Positions 3,826 through 21,312 of a DNA stretch of 55,097 nucleotides are shown piece after piece. The translations under genes were made by a program, and so were the position numbers. This stretch comes from Pelomyxa schiedti (lineage: Eukaryota; Protista; Evosea). The stretch spans positions 1 through 55,097 of the forward strand of contig JAHLWZ010000141.1 of assembly GCA_020536535.1 (NCBI GenBank), written 5' to 3'. Positions within the stretch are counted from its first letter, which is position 1. The number at the start of each line of letters is the position of its first letter. The notes under the pieces were generated by a model that had not been told where the DNA came from, did no database searches, and saw only the letters and a list, made by a program, of their open reading frames with translations.

Positions 3826-4312
3826 GGGAGTGTGATGAAATTAAACAAAACAAACGGGATCGGCAAGCGTTGAAACGGTTTTCGTTTCTTCTATTGTTTT
3901 AATAGTTTCAAATTGGGGGGGTGGCTTTGGAACTAGTTCCCTGCGGCACGGGCCAGGAACTTGGATTCCTCAGCGGAATTGCCTATTGCAGCGTAGAAGG
4001 CAGCTATGTTGCGGCAGGCCTTGGATACGTCGGGGTGGCCCGAGGGGAACAGCGAGAAAAAGAGCAGAGAGAAAGGGAGCAAAGAGAGAGACAGCAGCAA
4101 CTACAGCGAGAACNNNNNNNNNNNNNNNNNNNNNNNNNNNNNNNNNNNNNNNNNNNNNNNNNNNNNNNNNNNNNNNNNNNNNNNNNNNNNNNNNNNNNNN
4201 NNNNNNNNNNNNNGGGAGTGTGATGAAATTAAACAAAACAAACGGGATCGGCAAGCGTTGAAACGGTTTTCGTTTCTTCTATTGTTTTAATAGTTTCAAA
4301 TTGGGGGGGTGG
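3826..4312. repeat. 99-bp direct duplication (3826-3924 = 4214-4312) flanking a second 100-N gap (4114-4213), plus an inverted 66-bp copy (4045-4110) of 2896-2961; probable misassembly
   Basis: Both copies match exactly by eye and both abut N gaps. Confidence 0.85.
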
Positions 4313-7300
4313 ATGGGAAGTTACCTCGCCATAGTAGGAACGAAGAATAGAAAGGCTCCTTGAGTACAGAGGAATGATATGTCCAGGATTCCTTGGTGTG
4401 TTGTTGAGTGTGGAAAAAAATTAGGATTTGCTTTGCACACCTCCCTTGGCGCTGATATAGATTAGCCAGTTTCAATAAGGTCTGGCAAATATTAGGGTGC
4501 GACTCCCCAAACTTTTTCTCTGTTGTCTTGAGTGCTTCCTGGAACATAGTCTCTGCTTCAGAGAATAACCCCTTATCAGTCAGAATAGCAGCTACATTGT
4601 TCCTGGCGCAAAAAGTCAGCTAGGAGTGAAATGAAACAATTCGTACATCGATTGTGCGGTATCAGGGTGGTCAGGCCCAAGAACCTGGTGCATGGTAAGG
4701 CCCAAAGTATGTTTTCGTTCTGTTTTGGAGGGGGAAAAAACCTCGCGTCGGATATCAAGGCATTGTTGATAGAGCTGAAGAGCCTTATCGTAGTCGTGCA
4801 TTCTGGCATGAAGCACTCCATAGTCACTTAGAGATTGCGCAACCTAATTTCATAAGAAAGAAGAGGTTGAGAAGGAAGAAGTTACTTCGGGATGACGTTT
4901 TCCGAAAGCTTGTTGTTTGATAGAAATAGCTCTCTCAAACAACGGTTTTGCCTGTAAGTTATAAGAACCAATTTTTAAGATGCAAACTATCACTGAAGCA
5001 CACTTGCAAGTATTTTCCTTTTTCCACCTTTTCAAATTAAGAAGGATTCTATGTATGGGGATCTTACAAATACACCGGCTAAATATGCCAAAGTGTGAGC
5101 AACATCAGGATGTGCCTCTCCATAGACGTCTTCATATATTCTGAGAGCTCTTTCGAAAAGGCGTTCTGCACAGATTAAATGAAAGTAACACGAATTTCGT
5201 TCTACCTGAGTCATCATACCGAGCTTGTGAAAGATACAAAGATGCCATATTAGAAAGTGTCATAGCAACATCGGGGTGATTAGGGCCGTGACAATGTTCC
5301 CTTATTTGCAAAGCTATGGTGAAGTGTTCCTCGGATAACTTACAAAAAAGATTCAGTTGGAATGGTTTGTTGGTTGGAAAGTTCTACCTTGTCTTTCCCT
5401 GTATCCTGATAGAGGCACCCGAGCCCATTGTATGACATACCTGTCTCAGGGTGATTTAAACCAAGTAGCTTGAAAGGATGATGAGAGCCAAGAAAAAATA
5501 GTGAAGGCTTGCCTTTTTACGCAATACACAGGAGCCTGAATAAAGAGGTTCAGCTTTGTCATATTTCCCCATTTTCCTATTTGTTACGGTTTGTTGGCAA
5601 TATATAAGGATGTATGGCGGAGAACCTGAACAGTATAGCTAGACTGCACATAGAAGCAGCTACCTCACGAGATTCGGGTCCATGCAATTGTTTGCGCGTT
5701 TTAAGAGATTCTTCATATATTGGGCATGCTTCTTCATATCTAGCTTGGACTCTGTACAAGTATCCAAGGGCATCCCTTTTCGGTTCAGTATTTTTTTATC
5801 CATTTGAAGAGAAATTACTGCACATCTGCCAGAGCAGATAGGTCAACAGGAGTCTGTGTGGATACGAGGGTAAGAGCAACTTTGAAAAGTTGTTCAGCTG
5901 CAGAAAAGTGGGCTAAGTCTTGAAGGAATTTTCCAGTCTGTCTAATTTTGGCTGCATCATTCCGGAAAGTGGAATGTATAACCCCATTGACAAGTTTTTC
6001 TGCTGGATTTAGTGAAGAACATGCCCTGAAGTATTTGTACCTTTTTAAAAAAAAATTGTTATTCAAGAAGGGAAAATTACCCAACATACAGATCAAACAA
6101 AAACTGCTCTGATGAGAGATAGAAGAAAACCTCTGGAGTGGTGATGAAATTACATAGTTCTGTAATCATGCCAGCTTGGTGGTAGTGGTAAGGAACTTCT
6201 TCACATTTTCTATCCATGTAATTTGAATCACTGTGTAAAGTTAGTCTTGGATTTCACTTCGTTTAGAGGCACACAGGAAGTGGGTAATAATTTTGTTCCG
6301 GTAGACCTGAGATGATGAAGGAGTGATATATTTTGAGGCAACGGACTGCTTTACAAAATCGTGAGAAAAGTTGAGGAGACCTAAAGGACAGTCAATGAAA
6401 CATTAAGAAGGCATTGATGACCTGATCGGGTTGAGAGAAGCTCTGACAGTGCGAGTTGTATCTCACTCCACAAAAATGGGGTAATGTGGAGAATGCTTAG
6501 GATTTCATTTTCAGTCAATCCTCTGCGGCTGATCCAAATCTAATCACAAAATTACTCCAAAGGGGGATAAAGCAGTGGGAATACTGTAGCCATGCAATCC
6601 CCAACGTAATTCTTCTTATCCCCAAAGTCCGTTTCAATACGAGCCAAAACCTAGTGTTTATTAGGATTTCAGAAGTAAAATAGCCAATAAACCTTTCCCA
6701 GAAGGTCTGGAATTCCTGTAGCTGACAAGCACTGTGCTATTCGAGCATTCAGTGTTTCATATGCACCATGAACACGAATTTCGTTAAGCACAGTTTTAAG
6801 GAAAAGGGGATTTGCTGTTTGTGGTGAATCGATAATGCTAACAACAGTTAACGTGTTATAAGCTACAGTGAAAATTACCCATCAATCTGTGAAGAAGACA
6901 AAGACTTGGAACAGTCAGACATGTAGGAAGAAATTAATTCTCTGCGTTCCCGTTCTTCCATTGCTTCAACTTTCAGAGTGCGCCATTTTCTTTCGGTCAA
7001 TATCTATCATCATGAGAAATTAGCAGATAACAAAGAATACCTCAGCAGCGCGAGAAGGTAGCGTTGAAGTTATGAGTTGTACACCAGGTGGGAATTGAAC
7101 TGGTAACCAGTGCAATTCCTGTGCGTGATCTCTGCAATGATGAGAGAGAACAGGGAGAAGAGAAAAATTACTTTTCATCGAGCTGATTCAAGGCATCAAG
7201 AACAAGAAGCATGCCTCCTCGTGATGAGGCCTCCAGTAAAATGGAGGGAAGTAATGTAGAAAGCCCTGATTCAAGCATAAGTTTATGATCAATAAGGAAT

Positions 7301-10001
7301 GAAGTGGTTCACTGTGCCTTCCACATCATTGGGCAAGTCCTTATTAGGAAGTTCGAAGTAGTCAACAATTTCTGAAATTATCCTGTGCAACATTCGACCT
7401 TTATTTTATCAGTACAGTTTGCCTAGTTTTGTTTAGAATTTGTTTCCGTTACCCAGGTCAGTGCTTAAGCCACTGCACCCAATGTAGTGGGCTAATACAA
7501 ATGACTCGGGATGCTCATTTTCGTACCGCACAACATAGTTACAGACAAGAGCACTTTTGCCACTTCCGGAATTTCCTACAATGACTATTGGGCTTGGGTG
7601 TTGATTCTACGAATTATCAGTGAAAATGGACTGTGCTTTTAGTGTCGCTACCTGCGCTTGACTTGCCAGGAAGCAATTTATCTGAAACATGTAATGTTCC
7701 CCACCAACATAAACTCTGGCCCTTGACTGAGCAAATGCATTGTGAACTTCTCTTTCTTTTTCAAGAGGAGTAGGACGATCAGCTTCAGGGAAATCCCTGT
7801 TAATTATGGAGGTTAGAAAACCACAATAAGGCGTTCATACCTGTCAATTAAAGCCATGAGTTGTTTACTAAAGAGAGAGTCTAGCATTGAGGGATTATCA
7901 TAGTGATGAACATTTTCCGGGAAGCGTTGTTCAATGGATTCCTGTATTTCAAATAAGTGAAGTCACTGGTTGTGCTGGTGGTTATACGCACTTTTAGTGA
8001 CTTCAACTTTCGACTAGTCTGGGGGTTTGTTTCTTCGTAATCTGGCCCCTTCCCTTTGGAATAGCTTTCATTTCGGAAAAAGAAGGCACAGTGTTTTTGG
8101 CTTTCGTCAGTGGGGTTGGCTTGGTTCAGGACTGTTTCAAGTTATTTATATTTGGAAGAGGAAAAGGACTTACTAGCATGGCGTATTTCTAATTCTGTGA
8201 TGCTCCTGTCCACGTAGCTCATTATCCATGGAAACTGGGAACTTGCATTGGCAAAAGTCTTTGTGAGGAGATCGTCTAAGTGGAGGGGTGAGCTTTGAAA
8301 AAGTGGTATCCTTCATACCCCTTGCATTATCTGTATGGCTCCAACCATAGCGATCACCAAGCATGCAGAAAAACCAGGGCCGGCACTTGTCAACTTGCAG
8401 AGAGTTAATACCGTGAAAAAGTAGTCTGCCTACTTTCTGAAAGACAAATCGAAATAGTGTTCCCACTTTCAGACTGTTCCGCAGTGATTCCCCAACGTAG
8501 GTCAACCTAACGACGGTATTTAGAAAAAATAAGCGAGGTAAGTCAAGCCTACTTCTCGGACAGAAACTCCGCGTTGGGCACAAAGAATCCGAATTCCAGG
8601 CATCACTCGCTTAATTAAAGTCTCTCTCTCCACTGACATATCTTTGAAGGTGCTACTGATAAAAATTCTAACATCCCGAGACTCCATGTGCCTCCTCTTA
8701 CGCTTTTGTGTGGAAAGATTGTCTGGTACAGGAAGTGCAGAAGCCTGAGGCACTTCAGCGTACTGTAGAAGAGCACAGTTAAGCATCTTCTGTTGTGCTG
8801 CAATATCAGCTTCTCGGTCAGTATCCCCGTCCTGGTAGGGTATTAGTGGGGGGTCACAGCTTCAACATTCAACCTGAATAGAGGAGCCACTAAAAGAGAA
8901 GCTATCCAAAATATTTTGCTGTTGGGCAAAATAGTTCTCTCTATCGAGTTCCATGGCAGATATGTGCTCTAACGATTTTTAAAAGATACTCGAGTATTAA
9001 TCTAGAAATAACCTTGCACAGAAATGCCACATGCAGGTTCCGTTACAGTTGAACCTAAAGTGGGGGAAGGTTCTTCAACGGCGGAGAAAGGGTCAACCGG
9101 TGCTACGTTGGCAATAGGATCCACATTCACATTTAGAGAATCGAAATCCATGACTTCTCTGTGAGACAGACTTACAATATCCGTGTTTTGTGCCATTAAA
9201 AAGTCCATGGGGTCACGGTTGGAAAGAGGAATTTGTGTCAGCTGCGACTGGCCAAAATCCATTGCATTTCGGTGTGACAGGTTAGGTTGAATCATCTGCG
9301 TGGCGCCGAAATTCATGGCCTCGCGGTGGCTAAGAGAGCTGCTCCTGGTCTGTTGAGTTACACGCATCTCCATGGCATCACGGTGATTCAGGGCCGGCTT
9401 TATAGTGCGCTGGGATTCTATCCGTGGCGGGAAATTCATTGCCTCGCGGTGTGAGAGCGCCGACATCGCCGGTTGCTGCGTAACAACATTGAGAGAAGAT
9501 GGCTGCGGCTGCGGAGGTGTGGGAGTAAAGTCCATCGCGCTTCTGTGCGCGAGCCCGCCCAGGCAGATGTTTTGGGCTGCAGTGAAGTCCATTGCCGATC
9601 TGTGGGGCAGAGCAAAGTTCTTCACGTTTGAAATTGACATTGCCTCCCTGTGGGCCAGTGGCGCCGCGGTCGTCTGTTGCTGCTGCTGCATCATCGCCAT
9701 GGTGTTCTGCATCTGGCTTTGAATCATCCTCACTGCGGCTTCTTGCTGCTCGCGCGCCTGTTGCATTGCGAGGTCCTTGTTCGCAGGTGGGAAATCCATT
9801 GCAGCACGGTGCTGCACTGTTTTGGTTTTCAAAATTGTTTTTGTTAGAAGGACAGGTGGGCGTGTGTAGGGAAAAAAAAAAAGGGAGCACACGAGAAGGG
9901 GCGGCTCTGTTGAGCCTCGAGGGCATTGATGGTTGTTGTTGTTGTTGCACATTGTTGAGACTCAGGGGCACGTTGTGGGTGAGCTGGAACGCTTCCATCA
10001 T
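4296..10001 (-). CDS. DUF4062 + NACHT-type P-loop NTPase + TPR protein (NPHP3/TEP1-like architecture) with an N-terminal repeat region; many introns
   Basis: DUF4062 start DVRIFISSTFKDMSVERETLIKRVMP (~8600-8690). Walker A IVGNSGSGKSAL (~7550-7590). Walker B LLVLDALNQLD (~7180-7215). TPRs such as YEEACPIYEESLKTRKQLHGPESREVAASM and LFERALRIYEDVYGEAHPDVAHTL. Start MMEAFQ at 10001. The 3' end is approximate. Confidence 0.85.
9143..9811 (-). repeat. Ten copies of coding peptide motif (L-x)-H-R-x-A-M-[DN]-F in the N-terminus of the DUF4062-NACHT-TPR gene
   Basis: HRAAMDF, HREAMSI, HRSAMDF, HRSAMDF, HREAMNF, HRDAMEM, HREAMNF, HRNAMDF, NRDPMDF, HREVMDF in ORF 9002..9952. Confidence 0.9.
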
Positions 10002-10922: not shown

Positions 10923-12066
10923 TCACATACTGGTTAGTCCTTCCTAGAAGTTATGTTTAGTGTGGGTGTTTAGTGGGAAAGAGTTCTTACCATCTCTAGT
11001 TTTTTCATGAGCTTGGTTGTGAAAGGTGAGTTCTTGTTATTTCTCAGCTCGTTGACGATCCAAGGTATGTCTGCTAGTGGGTTCACAATGTAAGCGGGGT
11101 ACTGTTGCCCTTGGTCAACAATAACCAGCCCTTGTTGTGTAAGCCAGTCCAAAGCCTAATGTTTGTTTCATTAGGGGAAAAGGTGGGGCAAAAAAAAAAA
11201 AGAAAAAAGCAAACATACCCTACTTAAATCATAGCCATATGCCACACAACCAACTTGGGCACAGTATTCCGCGTACTTGTACTAGTTCAAATAAGGGCAA
11301 AATAACTATTCAAGTCACACAATACTCTAATAAGCCCCAGTTCAGCCCGCGTGCCCAACCCCCCCGCTTCTCCCTTGGTCCACATCTTCAGGAAGTTATA
11401 AGCCGTCAAAAATCCGTTGTATTGTGGGACAGCTTCCGCCCCTTGGACGCAAGACGCCATGGTCTGGTGCGGAGGGTAAACTGCGCCCATCCCATAATTC
11501 ACTGGCTGGTTCGTTTGCGTGTAGGTGGCGGCACTGCCGGTTGCAAAGTAACCGGTCGCCGTGGTGTCTGTTCCCGCCCCATAACTTGGGTGCGCGATCT
11601 GCACTCCACCGTGAACTAAAGCCGTCGTCGTGGTCGTGGATGTGGCCGTGGTAGTTGGGGCGTTGTTGGCCGAGGTATCCGCGATCATGGGATGATAGTT
11701 GGCCTCGGGTGACACGTTGCCAGGTGCGCCGGCGTGATTGGCGTCGTGGCTGGTCGGCGTCGAGTACGAGGCATCGGGCACATCGTTGTCTACAGGCCCG
11801 CCCTCGTCGTTGTCTTCGATGGAGTCCTCGGCACCGTTAGTAGCAACAGGGAACCCGCCATGCTGGATTGTGGGAGGTGGCGGTGACGGGGTGTGGGCGT
11901 TGGTGTCGAGGGCGGTTGATGGAGTTATGGTTGGGGGCGCGGGAGAGGCTGGGTCATTGGGGTATGATGTGTCCGGTGACAAAATTGTGGGAGAAAGTCG
12001 TGGCGACAGGGGGTTTCCTTCCTCAAGCACCAAACTCTGGTCCTGTGTGTTATCACTTGTCATCAT
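10923..12066 (-). CDS. Hypothetical protein: disordered Pro/Thr/Asp-rich N-terminus plus a ~110-aa compact C-terminal domain
   Basis: Large first exon, then GT-AG joins giving ...LGLIR|YKYAEYCAQVGCVAYGYDLSR|ALDWLTQQGLVIV...KKLEM|EGLTSM*. Confidence 0.6.
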
Positions 12067-12306: not shown

Positions 12307-14154
12307 ATGGCCAGCGTAAGTGACTTCGTATTTCAATCCCCTGTTTTCACCTATTCACCTTGATTCAGCCTTTGAACGTGCACGTGTTCATCATTGACGC
12401 CGTTGATCTCATTGCTGGCGATCGCGACGGCTCCACTGCTCCTTACGTTATTCTGGTGTGTAATTATGGGAGCCAATGCGTGTGCACTGAGTGGCACTAA
12501 CTACTTGTTAATTATCCTCCCTGACTTTTGGCTATACTAAATAGAAATATGGTGACAAAAAAAGTAAGAGGCCACAGACAAAGTATTTGCGCAAGTCGTG
12601 GCAATCGAGGGAACACGCAACGGTTGGGTCTCTGTTTGATGAATTACTCTCTTATTGTTTTTGTCAATAGTGGAATGAAAGTTTCGCATTTCGTTACGAT
12701 CCGAACTACAAGTTCATCAAGTTCTCTTTGATGGTGTGTTTGTTTGTTTGTTCGAATCCTTTGTATTAACAGGGCGGGGGACAGGATAAAGATCAGTTTA
12801 AAAGAGATGATAAACTAGGTTGCTGTATACTCACCCTTGTCTGCATTGAAAATAAGTGGCAAGAGTTTATCCTGCGAGTGAAAGTATATCATCTTTCGCA
12901 ACCTTCATGGTAATCATATACAGAAAGCTGAATCTGGGCTTCTTCATGTGATGGTCAAATTTTCCACCTGTCTGAAGGAAGCTCCACCCACACCTGCACA
13001 AGTTCTCGCTAAAGGAACTCCAATTATAGAAAAAGTCACTCAGGAGTTATCAAGGTCGAAGTCTAAAAGTACCGCAGCTTCCACCGAATTTGCAATATCA
13101 GCGCCTCAAAGCTGTTCTCGTGTGATGCACTTGGGGTTCTCCAATGAAGGAACTTTTGAAGTACCCGCTTCCAATAGATGTACTTCGTTGACGAGGTTTT
13201 TTTTGTATAGGCAGAAGGACTGTCTGAAGAATGGAAAGCTTGGCTAAGAGGGGTTGGTGTAAAGAGGAAACACATGGCAAACCCCGAAAAGAGGAGGGCA
13301 ATATTTGAGGTTCACAATATCCTTTCTTCTTAATCACCTTTCCAACGAATTTCCCAAGGTGATATTCAAAGCCATGGTGTCAAGTGATCCAGCTCTACAG
13401 CCCCCAGTGAACGTCTCTTCAGCAACTCCAAGCGCCACTGCAACACCAGCAACCACCCCAACGCCATCCCTTACCCCTACCCCTTCAACTCATACTCCCA
13501 CAGCTACCACTGTTGCATCTCCCGAACCACCGCCTACTCCTGCCAGACCCACACAGCCGCAACAAAACCAATCCACTCACGCAGAGCAACCAATGCCCCC
13601 GGTACTGCCTGCCCGATCTGAACCCCAAGTGAGCCCCCCGGCCCTTCCCCCAAGGAACCTGGATTCCCGCCCACCAACCACAGCTACAGCTACACCTACT
13701 GCTACACCTACTCCCGCTGCTACTCAAACAACCCAGGCCCCACCGCCTCCCCCGCCTCCGCCCATGCATCCTCCTGCTACCTCTGGAGGAGCTCCGCCTC
13801 CGCCGCCCCCGCCGCCGGCCCGGGCTTCTATGGTATGCACAATCCCCCCCTTGTTCTGTCCCGGTTCTCCAGGAATAACCGCATAACACACAAAACAGAT
13901 TGAATCCACTTCTGGTGGTGGTGGAGGAGGGGACCTTGCTCAACAGATACAAGCAGCCAAGTTGAAGTCAGCCAGCGAGAGGCCGCCTCCGCCGCCGCGG
14001 GATTCCCCTGAAGGAGCTGAACTCGTGAGGCGAATCATGAGTGTCATTCGTCCTGCTGTGGTATGCACTGTGTGATTTGTAAAGGGAATACTAACAACAA
14101 ATGCCTCAGGGTGACAGCTCCAGTGAGGACGACGACGGGGCATGGGACGACTAG
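12307..14154 (+). CDS. WASP-like nucleation-promoting factor with architecture C2 - CRIB/GBD - Pro-rich - WH2 - C - A
   Basis: Spliced C2: LNVHVFIIDAVDLIAGDRDGSTAPYVIL|KYGDKK...|WNESFAF...DDKLG...GLLHVMVKF. GBD: ISAPQSCSRVMHLGFSNEGTFE|AEGLSEEWKAWLRGVGVKRKHMANPEKRRAIFE. Poly-Pro tracts. WH2: GDLAQQIQAAKLKSA. Tail: ELVRRIMSVIRPAV|GDSSSEDDDGAWDD*. Confidence 0.85.
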
Positions 14155-14340: not shown

Positions 14341-17300
14341 ATGAGGAGCATACTGGTGGACAGACTTAAGATGTGGTTTGGGTCACTGCTCCTTTTGATT
14401 GGAGTAGTGTGTGCGGTCGGGGGTTTTGTTGCTGGAATAGGCTTGTTGGTCGCGCGAGAGTCGCTGCCAGATTGGGTCCCATCTTCGATGCCTTTCGCTA
14501 TGTAGCGTTTGCTTTTTTTTCCTGTGACGAGCTGGCATTGTGGGTTCATACTGACTTTTTTTTCATTGTTATTACTAGGTTTGTTGTTTCTGGGGCGGGG
14601 TTTTTGTACATTGGCCACCCCGTTGCCTCTCGGATTAAGGGCTCAAATTGCTTGCTAAGGAATGAAAAACCTAGTGACCATTCGTTGGGATTTTATGCAA
14701 CACCGCCAGAGGGAAAAGCCTGGAACAACATATCAATTGCTGATGTAAGGTAAACAGAGAGTGGATATTATAACTGAGCCATTGTTCCCGCTTCATGCAG
14801 GCTCTCAAGATATTGGAATCAGATAAAATAGTGGGATTACCACACGTGGATGCCATGTCCCGACTTGCTCAGTGTGGCCCAAACGTGATTTTCCCTGAGA
14901 AAAAAGCTACTACAGCTTTGAGTGCCTTTTTGTTGATGTTTCTAAAAGAGGTCCATGAACCAACACAGGTTGGCCCATTGTGAGGTACTCTAGCAAAATG
15001 GTAACTCACTCACAATAGATTCTTCTCCTATTAGTGGCTGTGCTATATTCCCTGGTGGGTGAAGTTGGAGAAGCAATATTTGCACTAAGTATAATATGCC
15101 TCATGATGATGTGTGAAGCCTTAACTGAATTCAGAGCTAAAAGAGCTGTGCAGAACCTTGGAAAAGAAGAGCCACAATTCGCTACTGTCATTAGGGAAGG
15201 TGAAATGAGCCGAATACTGCAAAAACAGGTCGTTCCTGGAGATCTCGTATGCCTGCAGCCTGGCTTTTCGGTGCCAGCTGATGCAATTCTCTTAAGCTCA
15301 TGGGATTTAGTTGTGGATCAATCGGCTATAACGGGCGATTCGGTACCCGAGTCAAAACATCCCATTGACAGTGGAAGTGACACCGAGACTAACTTTGTGC
15401 ATGCGAGTACGACCATTTTCAGGGGAAAAGGGAGAGCTTTAGTGGTGACAACTGGAAGCAAAACTCTTGTTGGCTCTATTGCTGCTACCGTTGACGATCA
15501 GCATAACCGCAAACAGCCCCAAACTCCAATGCAAAAGCAGCTTAAAACACTGGCCCTTATCCTTAGTGGCGTGGCTTTACTCTCTGCCATCTTAATAACA
15601 GTACTGGGAATTGTGTCCCACTTGTACTGGAAGGACATTCTCTTGACTGCCTTCGCAATTCTCTTTGCTACAATACCGGAGGAACTACCTATACTCGTTG
15701 TCGCTGTGCTGGCTGTGGGCGCACAGTCTCTTTCTAGGTCTCAAATTTATATCAAAAGAGTAAGAGCCATGGAGTCTCTTGCATTTGTGGACACTGTGCT
15801 GACTGATAAGACTGGAACTCTTACCACAAATAAGCTCTCTTTGGTGCGCGTGATCCTGCCAGAGCAATCTGGAGGGTTCCACACAATAGAAATGAAATTG
15901 AGTACAAGTGGGACCGGGGATTCTTCGGATTCTCAGCTTGACAATCAGAAAGTGGACTCTTACAGTGGACCTCTTCACCACTTATTTAGTGCCTGGTGGC
16001 ACTTCGTAGTTGACCCGTCTTCTACAGAGTGCCAGGTGTGGTTGGATTCATTTGACACGGCAGTGAACAATGCACTACGCGAACTGCAATTTCCTGGAAA
16101 AGAAACTCTATGCAAACCCATTTCGGGCTCCCTTACACAAGAATCACCCTTTGATCCTGCGAAAAAAATTACCACAAGAGAGTTCCACAATGACAACCAA
16201 GATATTACACTCTATGCAAAAGGTGCGCCAGAGGCTGTGCTTGAATGGTGTGCAATCCCAAAAGGAGAGGAAACGGCACAACTTGTAGAGGCTGTTAATG
16301 CTTCAGCATCACAGGGCGAGAGGGTAGTTGCCTTTGCGTTAAAATCCTCTTCAGTGCACCCAGATAAGGATCTACCTCCTCAAATAGTGGGAATGTTTTG
16401 CTTTGATGACCCCCTCGTACCATTTGCCGAACAAGCCGTGTCACAGTGCATCGATGGCTGTGTGAGAGTTGTAATGGTTACTGGGGACCATCCTAATACT
16501 GCTGGGGCTGTTGCATCCAAAGTAGGGATCACTGGTCCCGTTGTTAACTGTGGTGAAAAGGGCAGTGACTCAGAATGGGTGAGTGAGCTTGTGCCAAATA
16601 CTGGTGCCTTTTCTCGAGCTACACCTTTTAACAAACTGGCCATTGTAGAAAGATTTCAATCCAACGGAAATGTTGTGGCAGTAACTGGAGATGGCGTAAA
16701 CGATGCCCCTGCACTTGCAAGAGCAGATGTTTCCATTGCAGTTGCGAATGCCACTGATATAGCCCGCGAAGCCAGTTCCATGGTTGTTGTTGAGGGTGGA
16801 TTTCCATCTGTGATATCTGCCATGAGGGAAGGGAGGAGACTGTACAATAACTTACTTATGGCACTTGTGTTTTACTTGGGATGTAAACTTGGGGTAATTA
16901 TAATGTTTGTCGTGGGAGTCTTATGGCAAGGCTTTCCTCTCACACCCACGCAATTAATTTTGACAGAACTCTTCATGGATATTGGGGCAAGGTACTGCAT
17001 TTCCGTTGAAAAATTTCAAACTTATACCCAAATAGTACAAGCTTTGTTGCCGAGTCCGCCAGTGGGGATGTAATGAAAAGACCACCAGCAAGAAAGACGA
17101 ATATGCCACTAAGAGGACTTGCTCCTTGTCTCCGTATCATTGCTATCGGCTTGAGCTTAGCCCTATGCGTACTTGGCGGATTTACTGTGGGATTCCTGTC
17201 AGATCATGGTACTAACACAGGAAGCATGTCAAGTTCAAGTTCCTCCATCTCAAGTCTATGGCGGCTCTCATCTTTTTCATTCACTTCCGCATCATCCAGT

Positions 17301-17717
17301 ATTAATGCCGGCCAACCGGAACTCTCCATTTCCAAGGCACAAAGTATGGCATTTGCATGCTGGCTGAGTGGCCACTTCCTTCTCGCTTTCAACTCGCGCA
17401 CAGATACACTCCCACTGCTGAGGCACCCCACTTGCCTCTGGTCAAACAAAATCATCCTAGCCTGGGGCGCCGGCGTGGTACTCGCCGGAATTCTCATCGG
17501 AACAGTTCCGTGGGTGCAAACCGCGATCGGTTTCACCCAGCTTGGCGCCGCCGGCTGGATTACATCACTGGTGATAGCGGCCACAACCACATGCTGGATG
17601 GAGATTGCCAAATGGGCGCACTTTGTATCACCGAGACTGGCCATGCACACCTCCCGATACAATCGATACAGGCCATTCACAACGACGCCCCTGGAAATGC
17701 AGTCTCTTGGGGCTTGA
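14341..17717 (+). CDS. P-type cation-transporting ATPase (P2-like, prokaryote-type TM motifs)
   Basis: DKTGTLT phosphorylation site, TGDS (TGES variant), KGAPE, MVTGDH, GDGVNDAPAL; TM4 ATIPEELP. Intron 16992-17035 joins ELFMDIGA|STSFVAESASGDVMKRPP, linking ORFs 15034..17073 and 17073..17717. Two upstream introns add the GLPHVDAMSRLAQCGPN N-domain and an N-terminal hydrophobic segment. Confidence 0.92.
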
Positions 17718-17936: not shown

Positions 17937-20900
17937 ATGGAACCAACAAGCACACAACAGGCACCCCAAAGACTACAACAAGAACAGCAGGAGCAACTAC
18001 CACAGCAACAGAATGAAATGTGCAGCGCAGGGGTACTCGTGGAGGTAGCAGGTTCGAACCTGGGTACCTTCAGAAAGGACAACGAACACCTCGTTGGGCT
18101 GTGCGATTCCGGTGTTCTGGTCAGGAACTTCGTCTCAAAGGCTGTGATCGACTCACGTCGCAGCAGCGCCAACAGCCTGTTGTTCCAACACATACCTTCG
18201 AAGGATCACCACACAGACCCTCATATATCACACCTCAAGGACCAGTCTCTGAGAGGAAGCCGCTGCAACAGCGCACAGCAGATAAATGTCGATCATTCTG
18301 GAAACCCACAATTGGAATCGGGGAGCCCTAGAGAGACCGAGAGTGATGGCGACAGTGGGGATGACATCGAGGTGCTGAGGGTAAGGACCTCACGTACTGT
18401 CGGTGCCCTTGAGGGCCAGGATTCTGTGTCCGTAATTATGGGAACTCCGCAGAGGCCTCTCTCCCCTTCTTCTCCTTCTAGAAGGAGGATTCATGTAGTT
18501 GTATCACTTCGGACTGTACTTTTATGTGCCAGTATATCTATTCTGGCTGTTTCTGTGGTGTGTGCAGTTGTCCCCTTGTCAATTGGCTGGATGAAAACAA
18601 TGCAAAACCTGAGCAAGACTGCTGAAAGCAGCTTGGATACAGTATTTTTCCTTACCATTCTTTGGTTCTCCCTTCCTTTGACAAAAAAAATCAAAAAAGG
18701 AATTGGCTGCGCTGCGTACTTCTGTTGTCACATGGGCCAAAGGGAATATTACCTCCAAGTTCAAGGAACCAGTTTGTGTTGGGCTGGGTGAGGCTTTTTC
18801 TAAACTAAAAAAAGGTGGACATTATAAAGCAATTTCAAACTAGTTTGATGACGCAAATTCATCTGCTGGAACAGCCTCTGTTGATACAAGACAATCACCT
18901 GCCAATGCACCCTCTTATAAAGCCTGTTTTTGATGTCTTCTCCAAGGACTTCAGCAATTTTGTACACCTCAGTCTATGGAATCTCAACTTCCTCATATAA
19001 CTACAGAATTTGGGATGGAAAAATTCAATTGGGGAGCATGTAATGTCGGTTCAGAAGGATCTGTTTGGCCTCTTTGATGAGGCTTTTTCCAGCAATGTAA
19101 CTTATCTTATGTACAATGGAACGACCCCAACAACAAAGCGGGCCAGTAAAGTAACAACAAACTACAACCTACGTGACAGGCCATGGTGGTATGAATTTAA
19201 AAAAAAAAAAAAAACCCCTAAAATAATAAAGGGTTACTGCCTGTGCAAATGATGCGGACCTAGTATGGACAGACATCTACCTTTCTGTAATTATGCAAGT
19301 AAATGTCATTTCACTCACTGTCAAACTCCGTCCAACATCCCTGTCTGTGGCCCCTGTGATGCAAACTACAATGGCACTATATGGGCTGGCTCAATTTTTT
19401 TCAGAATGGAATGCAACTTCGCACGGAAGTGCCTTTCTGATGGACAACCGTTTGAATATGGTTGCAGGAACAAAAGGAATAACAGTTCAGGACAGCAAGG
19501 GTGCAATTCCGGCAAACATATCCTCGGTGTCAGCAGTGGTAGATGAAGTAAGCTTTCATTCTTATTCAATCAACTCACTATTTGCCTCTTAGTGGCTCAT
19601 CTATACTGGAGGACAGAAAATTGCTACTAGCTTTATATTTAATGACTCCATTTTTGTGGATGTTACACCAATTGAAGAAGAGGCTGGCCTCCTGCTATGG
19701 CTCGTTCTTCTTACTCCCTCAGAGGTATTCTTGGATTTATGAAAATGGGAAAATGTCTTACAAGAACAAGGATTTCATGGGGGACTTGGTTGCTGAGAAT
19801 AAGGATTCACTTGCGAATGCTAGACTGTGGATGGGGATTGTGGTGTCAATTGAAGCTGCTCTTGGGGTTCTTGTATTTGTTTTGGGACTCATTTTTGTTG
19901 CTGTCATTGTTCATCCCCTCAGGTGAGGTTTCTTCTTCTACTCTTCTCAGGTGACTTGACTTTTCTTGCAGAAAAGTTGTTGGCCAACTTAAACGAGTTT
20001 CAGATGGGGACTTGGATGCGGCCTCAGTAAAATCTGGAACTCAGAGCAAAGTACTCGAGATATCAGAGGTGGTTCTACCTCATTGTGATTTGAGTTAATA
20101 ATTCACCCCACAGCTTGAGGCTCAAGTCCTTATTATGAGAAATGCCCTTGACTCATTCAGCAAGCACGTTATATTACTTCTTCTGCCTCCCCTTACTCTA
20201 ACAGGTACATCCCCTCTGATGCAGTGAAGCACCTGTGCCGAAATAGCATGATAGCCGAAGTTGGGGTTCATAAGCGCTATTGCACCATTTTTTTCCTCGA
20301 CGTGTCAGAATTTGTACTCTCCTTCTTATTTGTATGTAATTTCTTATAAACCCAAGACCAAAATGATGGATCAATATGGAAGTTCCACAGTCATTCCAAT
20401 ACTTCACAACCTCTTTGAGCGGTTTTCGAATGTGCTTGCACAAAATAAAGCAGTAATTGATAAGGTAGTTACCAGCGCTACTTTATGTAACTAACTCCCT
20501 GCATAGTACATAGGGGATGCAATCATGGTCAGTAGCCCACTCTCGATATCAAAAAAAAGTAACATGATCAACATCCACAGGCTGTTTGGGGTGCTCTCGA
20601 TAATTTGGATGGTGCAGAAGGCCTTGCCTGCCGCGCTGCCCTTGAAATTTGTGAAGTACTGGAAAAGGAAAACGTACAGTATCAAAAAAAACTTGGGCTC
20701 GAAATCAAGATAAGGATTGGAATTCATAGCGGATTGTGTTGGTCAGGAAATGTTGGCTGCTCCCATAGACTTAACTATACTGTACTAGGTGGGATAATTC
20801 CCCCTCATGGTTTCTACCTTGAGTCTCCTTATTCCTAAAAAGGGAACTCTGTGAATCTGGCAGCAAGGCTGGAACCACTAAATAAAGAATTAGGGAGCAC

Positions 20901-21312
20901 TATCTGTGTATCCAGTGCTATCCGAAATGCATCCAAAGGGTACACTTCTATCGCGCATTTCCCTTCCACAAACCAACAACATATTCTTGCATTCCTACAA
21001 CTAGGTTTGTATTCAGAGCTGTTGGAAGTTGCCCCATTAGAGGCTTTGCAAACCCGGTTTTGTGTCACGAGCTTCTTGGAATGCAAGAAAAGTTACCCCA
21101 AAAGGCTGAAAATATAGCCAAAAATTTTGGTTTCATTGACGAGGCTTTGATGCAAGGTCTGCCTTTGGAGAAAACATCCCTGTCTTCCTATCTGGAACAG
21201 AACAAATCAGATTTGGTATGTTGAGATCCCAACATTAAGATATTTCTGTCTAATTTTCCCAAAGGTGGCACAGAGACTACTTGCGTTACTAGAGCAGAAT
21301 AAACTATTCTGA
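17937..21312 (+). CDS. Receptor-type class III adenylyl cyclase (TM - extracellular/Cache-like - TM - HAMP - cyclase), multi-exon
   Basis: CTIFFLDVSEF (metal Asp), VIDK|YIGDAIM (Lys = ATP-specifying), IRIGIHSG, RLNYTVLG, VNLAARLE (catalytic N/R). Two TM helices, then a HAMP-like LKRVSDGDLD segment. Confidence 0.88.

Follow-up and report, generated by a model that had tools for sequence, protein, structure and literature searches.

Among proteins of the WASP family, the N-terminal module sets where and when the Arp2/3 complex fires. This module can be a WH1 domain, the SCAR homology domain, the WASH domains or the IMD of the WAML proteins, and WAWH proteins have none. WASP and N-WASP are built from WH1, a basic region, a GTPase-binding domain (GBD), a proline-rich region and, at the C-terminus, a tail composed of WH2, central (C) and acidic (A) elements (together VCA). 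The WAWH proteins of amoebae ("WASP without WH1") fall into three types. Type I consists of basic region, GBD, proline-rich region and VCA with no folded N-terminal domain, type II carries CxxC motifs and a coiled coil, and type III carries a charged region of ~800 residues (Kollmar, Lbik & Enge 2012, PMC3298513). Entamoeba, a fellow archamoeba of the organism considered here, has three WAWHs and also WAMLs, and has lost WASP and SCAR (PMC3298513). In Dictyostelium, the formin ForA is placed by a C2 domain that binds phosphatidylinositol 4,5-bisphosphate (PI(4,5)P2) together with a GTPase-binding site (PMC7183788). Here we describe Pelo_1646, a 450-residue protein of the anaerobic amoeba Pelomyxa schiedti encoded in a stretch of 55,097 nucleotides (contig JAHLWZ010000141.1, positions 1 to 55,097 of the forward strand, assembly GCA_020536535.1; hereafter the window). 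It is probably a WASP-family, WAWH-like nucleation-promoting factor that is recruited to anionic membrane by an N-terminal C2 domain.

A WAWH-like core behind a C2 domain

WAWH is the closest described kind to Pelo_1646, a likeness drawn from the published descriptions of that family. Like WAWH type I, Pelo_1646 lacks WH1, has a GBD, a proline-rich region and, at the C-terminus, a VCA with a tryptophan near its end, and comes from an amoebozoan host. The core architecture is the same. Pelo_1646 is set apart by a complete C2 domain at its N-terminus, which by their descriptions none of WAWH types I-III carries, and by the lack of the basic region that precedes the GBD in type I.

A sequence-only reading of this stretch had described the protein as WASP-like with a C2 domain in place of WH1. 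Part of this description stands, in that Pfam gives no WH1 match (PF00568) in Pelo_1646 at E<=10 and the C2 domain fills the N-terminus. Pelo_1646 lies 240 nt from the upstream gene, which is divergent, and its stop codon is followed by the downstream gene after 186 nt, so that a hidden WH1 exon would not fit. The notion of a replacement fares less well, because the WAWH family is already without WH1. The fitting description of Pelo_1646 is thus a WAWH-like protein to which a C2 domain was added, and not a WASP in which WH1 was swapped. The basic region is missing as well. In an alignment of 36 WASPs, the ten residues before the CRIB motif are rich in Lys and Arg throughout and include Lys and Asp columns that hardly vary; Pelo_1646 has Glu167 and Ala169 at those columns and three basic residues in the whole of residues 153-169.

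WASP and N-WASP have in common with Pelo_1646 the GBD profile match, the WH2, the acidic tail with its Trp and the poly-proline runs, but Pelo_1646 lacks both WH1 and the basic region and has one WH2 only. Compared with metazoan WASP, its C helix diverges from the consensus and its CRIB is without the Phe and the first His. WAML of Entamoeba (IMD-WAID-proline-rich region-VCA) also places a membrane-binding module ahead of a WASP-type proline-rich region and VCA, and it does so within the Archamoebae. However, its membrane module is an IMD/I-BAR rather than a C2, and it is described without a Rho-GTPase-binding (CRIB) part (PMC3298513). By analogy, the nearest functional precedent would be ForA (C2, GTPase-binding site, FH1-FH2), an amoebozoan actin nucleator that appears to follow the same control logic. 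ForA is a formin and does not activate Arp2/3; the filaments that it nucleates and elongates are unbranched, and the likeness is one of logic.

The C2 and WASP-type parts belong to one gene

Pelo_1646 occupies window positions 12307-14154 on the forward (+) strand, on which all of its features lie. Our hand-built model has 10 exons, 9 introns and 450 codons plus a stop, with the ATG at 12307 and the stop codon at 14152-14154. The first five exons lie at 12307-12315, 12369-12455, 12545-12622, 12671-12733 and 12785-12883, and the remaining ones at 12924-13160, 13211-13309, 13359-13832, 13899-14060 and 14110-14154. In the exon names used below, 12785-12883 is exon 4 and 12924-13160 is exon 5, and the C2 domain is encoded by exons 2-5. 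All nine introns are of the GT-AG type and measure 40-89 nt. The predicted product agrees letter for letter with the deposited GenBank entry "hypothetical protein Pelo_1646 [Pelomyxa schiedti]" (450 aa), which is annotated at exactly 12307-14154 on JAHLWZ010000141.1 of GCA_020536535.1. Exon 5, used as a HMMER query against a library of 1.84 billion proteins, retrieved one 450-residue protein at 100% identity, in which the exon forms residues 113-191. A shorter exon 3, in which Lys45 would be joined directly to Trp59, was rejected; no in-phase GT donor other than that at 12623 exists, and strands 3-4 of solved C2 chains align with the longer exon.

The order of elements given by the sequence-only reading, a single gene running from C2 through GBD, proline-rich region and WH2 to C and A, is borne out, and each element that it listed is present where it was placed. 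The four introns that it named (12316-12368, 13161-13210, 13833-13898 and 14061-14109) are all in the gene model, although five more had been missed, four of them in the C2 region and one (13310-13358) in the GBD.

Pelo_1646 is one transcribed, spliced gene. The study that produced the genome also produced a single-cell transcriptome, and RNA contigs from two of its runs leave out exactly 12884-12923, 13310-13358 and 14061-14109 (joints 12883/12924, 13309/13359 and 14060/14110), which confirms three of the nine introns. One contig begins 2 nt ahead of 13211, which fits a joint of 13160/13211. Among the introns named earlier, 14061-14109 is therefore confirmed by RNA, and 13161-13210 is consistent with it. 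Two DNA runs contain the whole stretch; the assembly was probably made from them, and so they do not count as independent support.

The C2 domain and the GBD are joined within one exon, because exon 5 (12924..13160) encodes, in one uninterrupted open frame, the last C2 strand (residues 113-127), a linker of 41 residues (128-168) and, with the CRIB motif, the GBD's first half. One RNA contig crosses the joint from C2 exon 4 into exon 5 and continues to 13038, at most 57 nt short of the CRIB. Reading the frame of exon 5 reveals neither a stop nor a splice signal between the end of this contig and the CRIB.

A basic C2 domain with four of five calcium ligands

The C2 domain covers residues 4-127 (12369..12968) and is interrupted by introns 12456-12544, 12623-12670, 12734-12784 and 12884-12923. 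It matches Pfam PF00168 over residues 7-99 with 54.6 bits (cut-off 22; E 1.4e-14). In the PDB, 66 C2 chains match Pelo_1646 at E<=1, headed by synaptotagmin-7, plant SYT1, PKC-alpha and NEDD4L, with E values of 1e-11 to 1e-6 for the C2 structures of synaptotagmin-7, PKC-alpha and NEDD4L. By these matches the C2 assignment is unambiguous. Queries made of single exons are too short for Pfam and PDB and gave just a 13.5-bit hint of a C2.

The domain is basic (isoelectric point 9.4), with 23 Lys/Arg versus 15 Asp/Glu. Its Ca2+-ligand positions were read against those of PKC-alpha (D187, D193, D246, D248, D254) and synaptotagmin-1 (D172, D178, D230, D232, D238) and correspond to D21, A27, D80, D82 and D88. 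Thus, four of the five aspartates are kept, and the full set of five acidic ligands that marks the Ca2+-dependent class of C2 domains is incomplete. Ala27 aligns with D178 of synaptotagmin-1 and D193 of PKC-alpha. Ca2+ control is doubtful because one ligand aspartate is Ala27, and the change D178N in the C2A domain of synaptotagmin-1 abolishes Ca2+-dependent liposome and membrane binding (PMC2726280). Judging from these residues, lipid binding by the C2 domain is more likely to be Ca2+-independent or weakly Ca2+-dependent. Of the membrane- or Ca2+-targeted nucleation-promoting factor proposed from the letters alone, the membrane part is reasonable given the basic C2 and the missing basic region, and the Ca2+ part is weakened by Ala27.

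The GTPase-binding domain and its altered CRIB motif

The GTPase-binding and autoinhibitory domain is assigned to residues 170-232 (13095..13382, with introns 13161-13210 and 13310-13358). Over residues 160-240, Pfam PBD scores 20.7 bits, 0.6 below its cut-off of 21.3. We also used a profile of 38 non-redundant metazoan GBDs, drawn from 120 fetched WASP and N-WASP proteins. This WASP-GBD profile matches residues 170-228 of the whole protein with 22.3 bits (E 5.9e-9 as a single comparison). On residues 160-240 it reaches 27.7 bits, a score that none of 5000 composition-preserving shuffles attained (best 6.8). The match spans the CRIB and the helices by which autoinhibited WASP keeps its C region bound, and Pelo_1646 thereby has the combination of CRIB and autoinhibitory helices that is common to WASP / N-WASP and WAWH type I.

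The CRIB motif itself (residues 170-183; 13095..13136) is partly degenerate, as had been proposed before, and alignment to the PAK1 CRIB and 36 WASP CRIBs now identifies the residues involved. Ile170, Pro173, His181 and Gly183 stand in columns that are invariant in the 36 WASPs, and the consensus Ser is also kept. Relative to the consensus I-S-x-P-x2-4-F-x-H-x2-H-V-G, the Phe is replaced by Cys176, the first His by Arg178 and the Val by Leu182, so that Pelo_1646 does not have the full set of consensus contact residues.

When the GBD was searched as a single sequence against the PDB, the best match was a fragment of PAK1 containing the CRIB and inhibitory switch (E 0.3), and no WASP GBD chain was returned at E<=10. 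The likeness to the PAK1 inhibitory switch lies in the stretches G-L-S-E-E-W and N-P-E. Based on these comparisons, the GBD may be of either PAK-type or WASP-type ancestry. Given a WASP alignment, AlphaFold models residues 181-231 as a hairpin and three helices with a predicted local distance difference test (pLDDT) score of 72-85, and the GBD is the only part modelled with confidence. The structural matches of this model (Foldseek, VIA) are the GBDs of PAK2, N-WASP and WASP, at Z 2.8-3.8 and E>1. The model was built on the WASP alignment and is therefore not independent evidence; a single-sequence run was poor (mean pLDDT 44).

Proline-rich region and putative Arp2/3-activating tail

Downstream of the GBD, residues 233-390 (13383..13922, with intron 13833-13898) are rich in Pro and Thr and predicted to be disordered. 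With 49 Pro and 28 Thr in 158 residues, this stretch qualifies as a proline-rich region. Runs of eight prolines are encoded at 13740-13763 (residues 352-359) and 13794-13817 (residues 370-377). The first two thirds (residues 233-351; 13383-13739, +) consist of short repeats rich in Thr, Pro and Ala, built from T-P, A-T-P and T-A-T units, and in this they differ from the plain poly-proline of metazoan WASPs.

A WH2-like actin-monomer-binding motif follows at residues 393-407 (13929..13973), with a helix predicted at 396-403. Compared by hhalign with 46 WASP VCAs, it is matched with a probability of 77% and E 2.1e-5, and Ile399 and Leu404 occupy invariant columns. The motif qualifies as a WH2, weakly, as the spacing from the helix to the LK pair is one residue below the consensus.

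The candidate C (central or connector) helix lies at residues 421-436 (14013..14060). The pattern described for C domains is three large hydrophobic residues spaced by three, followed by one or more basic residues (Kollmar 2012, PMC3298513). In Pelo_1646, Leu424, Ile428 and Ile432 stand at i, i+4 and i+8 and are followed by Arg433, the one basic residue. Separate AlphaFold runs predict the helix at 419-432 and at 421-436. This helix and the start of the acidic part may be nearer to the C region of SCAR/WAVE than to that of N-WASP.

The acidic tail (residues 437-450; 14110..14154, including the stop) is preceded by an RNA-confirmed intron and has seven Asp/Glu in its last 14 residues, with Trp448 third from the end. 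A local hhalign match to the acidic, Trp-containing end of WASP has an E value of 4.3e-4, and Trp448 stands in an invariant WASP column, so that the protein has the acidic C-terminus with Trp expected of the family. Of all the parts assigned, the tail is the most weakly matched. A profile of the whole tail, made from 46 WASP tails, scores 6.3 bits on the excised tail, and 8 of 5000 composition-preserving shuffles score equally well or better. On the full protein it scores 1.5-2.9 bits, with an alignment that is collinear through WH2, C, acidic part and Trp. We accept the tail as a VCA by its architecture, because the order, the spacing and the extreme C-terminal place downstream of the GBD and poly-proline fit, and from this we infer its activity.

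Search for relatives

Relatives were sought with the 79-residue exon 5 in HMMER, in two word-index searches that need shared 5-mers, in one metagenome scan and in the literature. The HMMER search returned only Pelo_1646 itself and says little about distant relatives. The word searches, made with residues 1-240 and 160-450, also returned the protein itself, plus matches at E~1 to Caenorhabditis WSP-1 that are partly driven by proline runs. BLASTP against WSP-1 gave low-complexity noise except for one collinear WH2 alignment. The scan of JGI metagenomes gave 600 pattern matches, of which 0 were confirmed, and a search of the ESM Atlas by features gave no usable match.

PF00168 is carried by none of the 120 WASP relatives listed. 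The term "C2 domain" is absent from the paper that defines WAWH (PMC3298513), and a survey based on InterPro, covering the CRIB proteins of Dictyostelium, Acanthamoeba and Entamoeba, has no C2 among the partner domains (PMC8847673). Among the papers searched, those listed as naming the C2 domain, the WH2 domain and Arp2 together describe no such fusion in their titles and the openings of their abstracts. The sequence-only reading knew of no described C2-WASP subfamily, and this agrees with what we found, namely that the combination of a C2 with the WASP part does not occur in the proteins or literature searched. Resting on searches of this kind, with none of eukaryote proteomes by full length or domain architecture among them, the absence of relatives is soft. 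What is new is the N-terminal C2 on a WAWH-like activator, the WH1-less WASP-type core being already known; Pelo_1646 is known from one gene in one species.

Proposed membrane-recruited Arp2/3 activation and its alternatives

If Pelo_1646 is a WAWH-like activator recruited to membrane, as we think probable, its basic C2 would dock the protein on anionic lipids (phosphatidylserine or phosphoinositides) and would take over the membrane-reading task that the basic region performs in N-WASP. The GBD helices could then bind the C helix and let go of it on a signal from a Rho-family GTPase, from membrane binding, or from both. The runs of proline may recruit profilin-actin or SH3 proteins, and the WH2-C-A tail would deliver an actin monomer to the Arp2/3 complex and activate branching. 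Recorded accessions show that P. schiedti has Arp2 as well as Arp3 (PMC11673790). A more specific form of this proposal, which we put forward tentatively and consider possible rather than probable, is that Pelo_1646 represents an undescribed subclass of the WASP family in which a classical C2 replaces both WH1 and the basic region. The C2, reading lipid and possibly retaining some Ca2+ sensitivity, and the divergent GBD might together act as a coincidence detector for Arp2/3 at the membrane, a counterpart of ForA that arose independently in the Archamoebae.

Several observations weigh against an active, membrane-recruited WAWH-like factor. The match of the VCA to metazoan WASP is weak (1.5-6 bits), neither Pfam WH2 nor the PDB has a match for the VCA, and hhalign detects no match of the C helix on its own to WASP tails, which leaves the motif and the predicted helix as the evidence for it. 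No orthologue of Pelo_1646 was found in the searches described above, so conservation cannot vouch for function. Coverage by RNA is fragmentary, with exons 1-3 uncovered and no single contig spanning the gene, and the contigs leave out 13039-13210, where the CRIB is encoded. The AlphaFold models show no confident contact between the GBD and the C helix, and fold matches are limited to the GBD; the models weigh neither for nor against docking of the C helix on the GBD. Canonical GTPase binding by the CRIB is in doubt, because the motif lacks the Phe and the first His, and Dictyostelium WASP no longer binds Rac once it carries the double change I173A/F179A (PMC6926487). However, at clathrin pits Dictyostelium WASP activates Arp2/3 even when its CRIB is not functional (PMC6926487), and therefore a degenerate CRIB does not exclude activity as a nucleation-promoting factor.

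The alternatives differ in which part of the protein they question. The C2 could bind membrane only when cytosolic Ca2+ rises, with Ca2+ transients triggering Arp2/3 branching. The best matches of the domain do belong to the Ca2+-dependent class (synaptotagmin-7 and -1, PKC-alpha and NEDD4L), four of five ligands (D21, D80, D82 and D88) are kept, and there are extra acidic residues (D23 and D87) in the loops. Nevertheless, the fifth ligand is Ala27, at the very position where D178N ends the Ca2+-dependent binding of synaptotagmin-1 C2A (PMC2726280), and we regard a Ca2+ switch as unlikely. Beside this Ca2+-gated version, the main other rival is a decayed or repurposed protein, with a tail inactive on Arp2/3, that serves as a membrane scaffold for profilin, SH3 proteins, actin monomers or a Rho GTPase, or else a young fusion of low function. 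The marginal similarity of the VCA, with a C helix that profile comparison does not detect, would be consistent with decay, as would the degenerate CRIB and the orphan status of the protein in the searches made. On the other hand, all ten exons share an intact frame, and the gene is expressed, with correct splicing. The tail elements also keep their order and spacing as well as Ile399, Leu404, Leu424/Ile428/Ile432/Arg433 and Trp448, and they end exactly at the C-terminus. A decayed or repurposed protein seems quite unlikely to us. It is very improbable that the annotation wrongly merged a small C2 gene with a WAWH-type GBD-VCA gene. Such an artefact could hide behind the missing RNA over 13039-13210 and the lack of a contig spanning the gene, but exon 5 is open from the last C2 strand through the linker to the CRIB. 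Moreover, RNA that enters this exon from C2 exon 4 ends at most 57 nt before the CRIB, the part between has neither a stop nor a splice signal, and the flanking intergenic gaps are just 240 nt and 186 nt.

If Pelo_1646 is indeed a membrane-recruited activator, a C2 in the N-terminal position would constitute a new class of input to the WASP family, the direct reading of phospholipid and perhaps of Ca2+. With its 450 residues, the protein would offer a compact natural test case for the cooperation between membrane binding and release of the GBD. It would also support a picture in which the Archamoebae, with canonical WASP and SCAR lost in Entamoeba, rebuilt their control of Arp2/3 through membrane-binding modules placed before the VCA.

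Neighbouring genes

Upstream of Pelo_1646 and divergent from it, window positions 10923-12066 (-) encode a 329-residue protein rich in Ser, Thr and Pro with no Pfam match; the two genes have the 240-nt upstream region in common. Downstream, 186 nt past the stop codon, a gene at 14341-17717 (+) encodes a P-type cation ATPase of 1007 residues (Cation_ATPase_N, E1-E2_ATPase and Cation_ATPase_C). That a cation pump adjoins the gene for a C2 protein is probably a coincidence. It is followed at 17937-21312 (+) by a gene for an 884-residue protein with a guanylate/adenylate cyclase domain (PF00211). The neighbourhood is flanked by giant genes for DUF4062-NACHT-TPR proteins, one at 3933-10001 (-) and another from 21419 (-).

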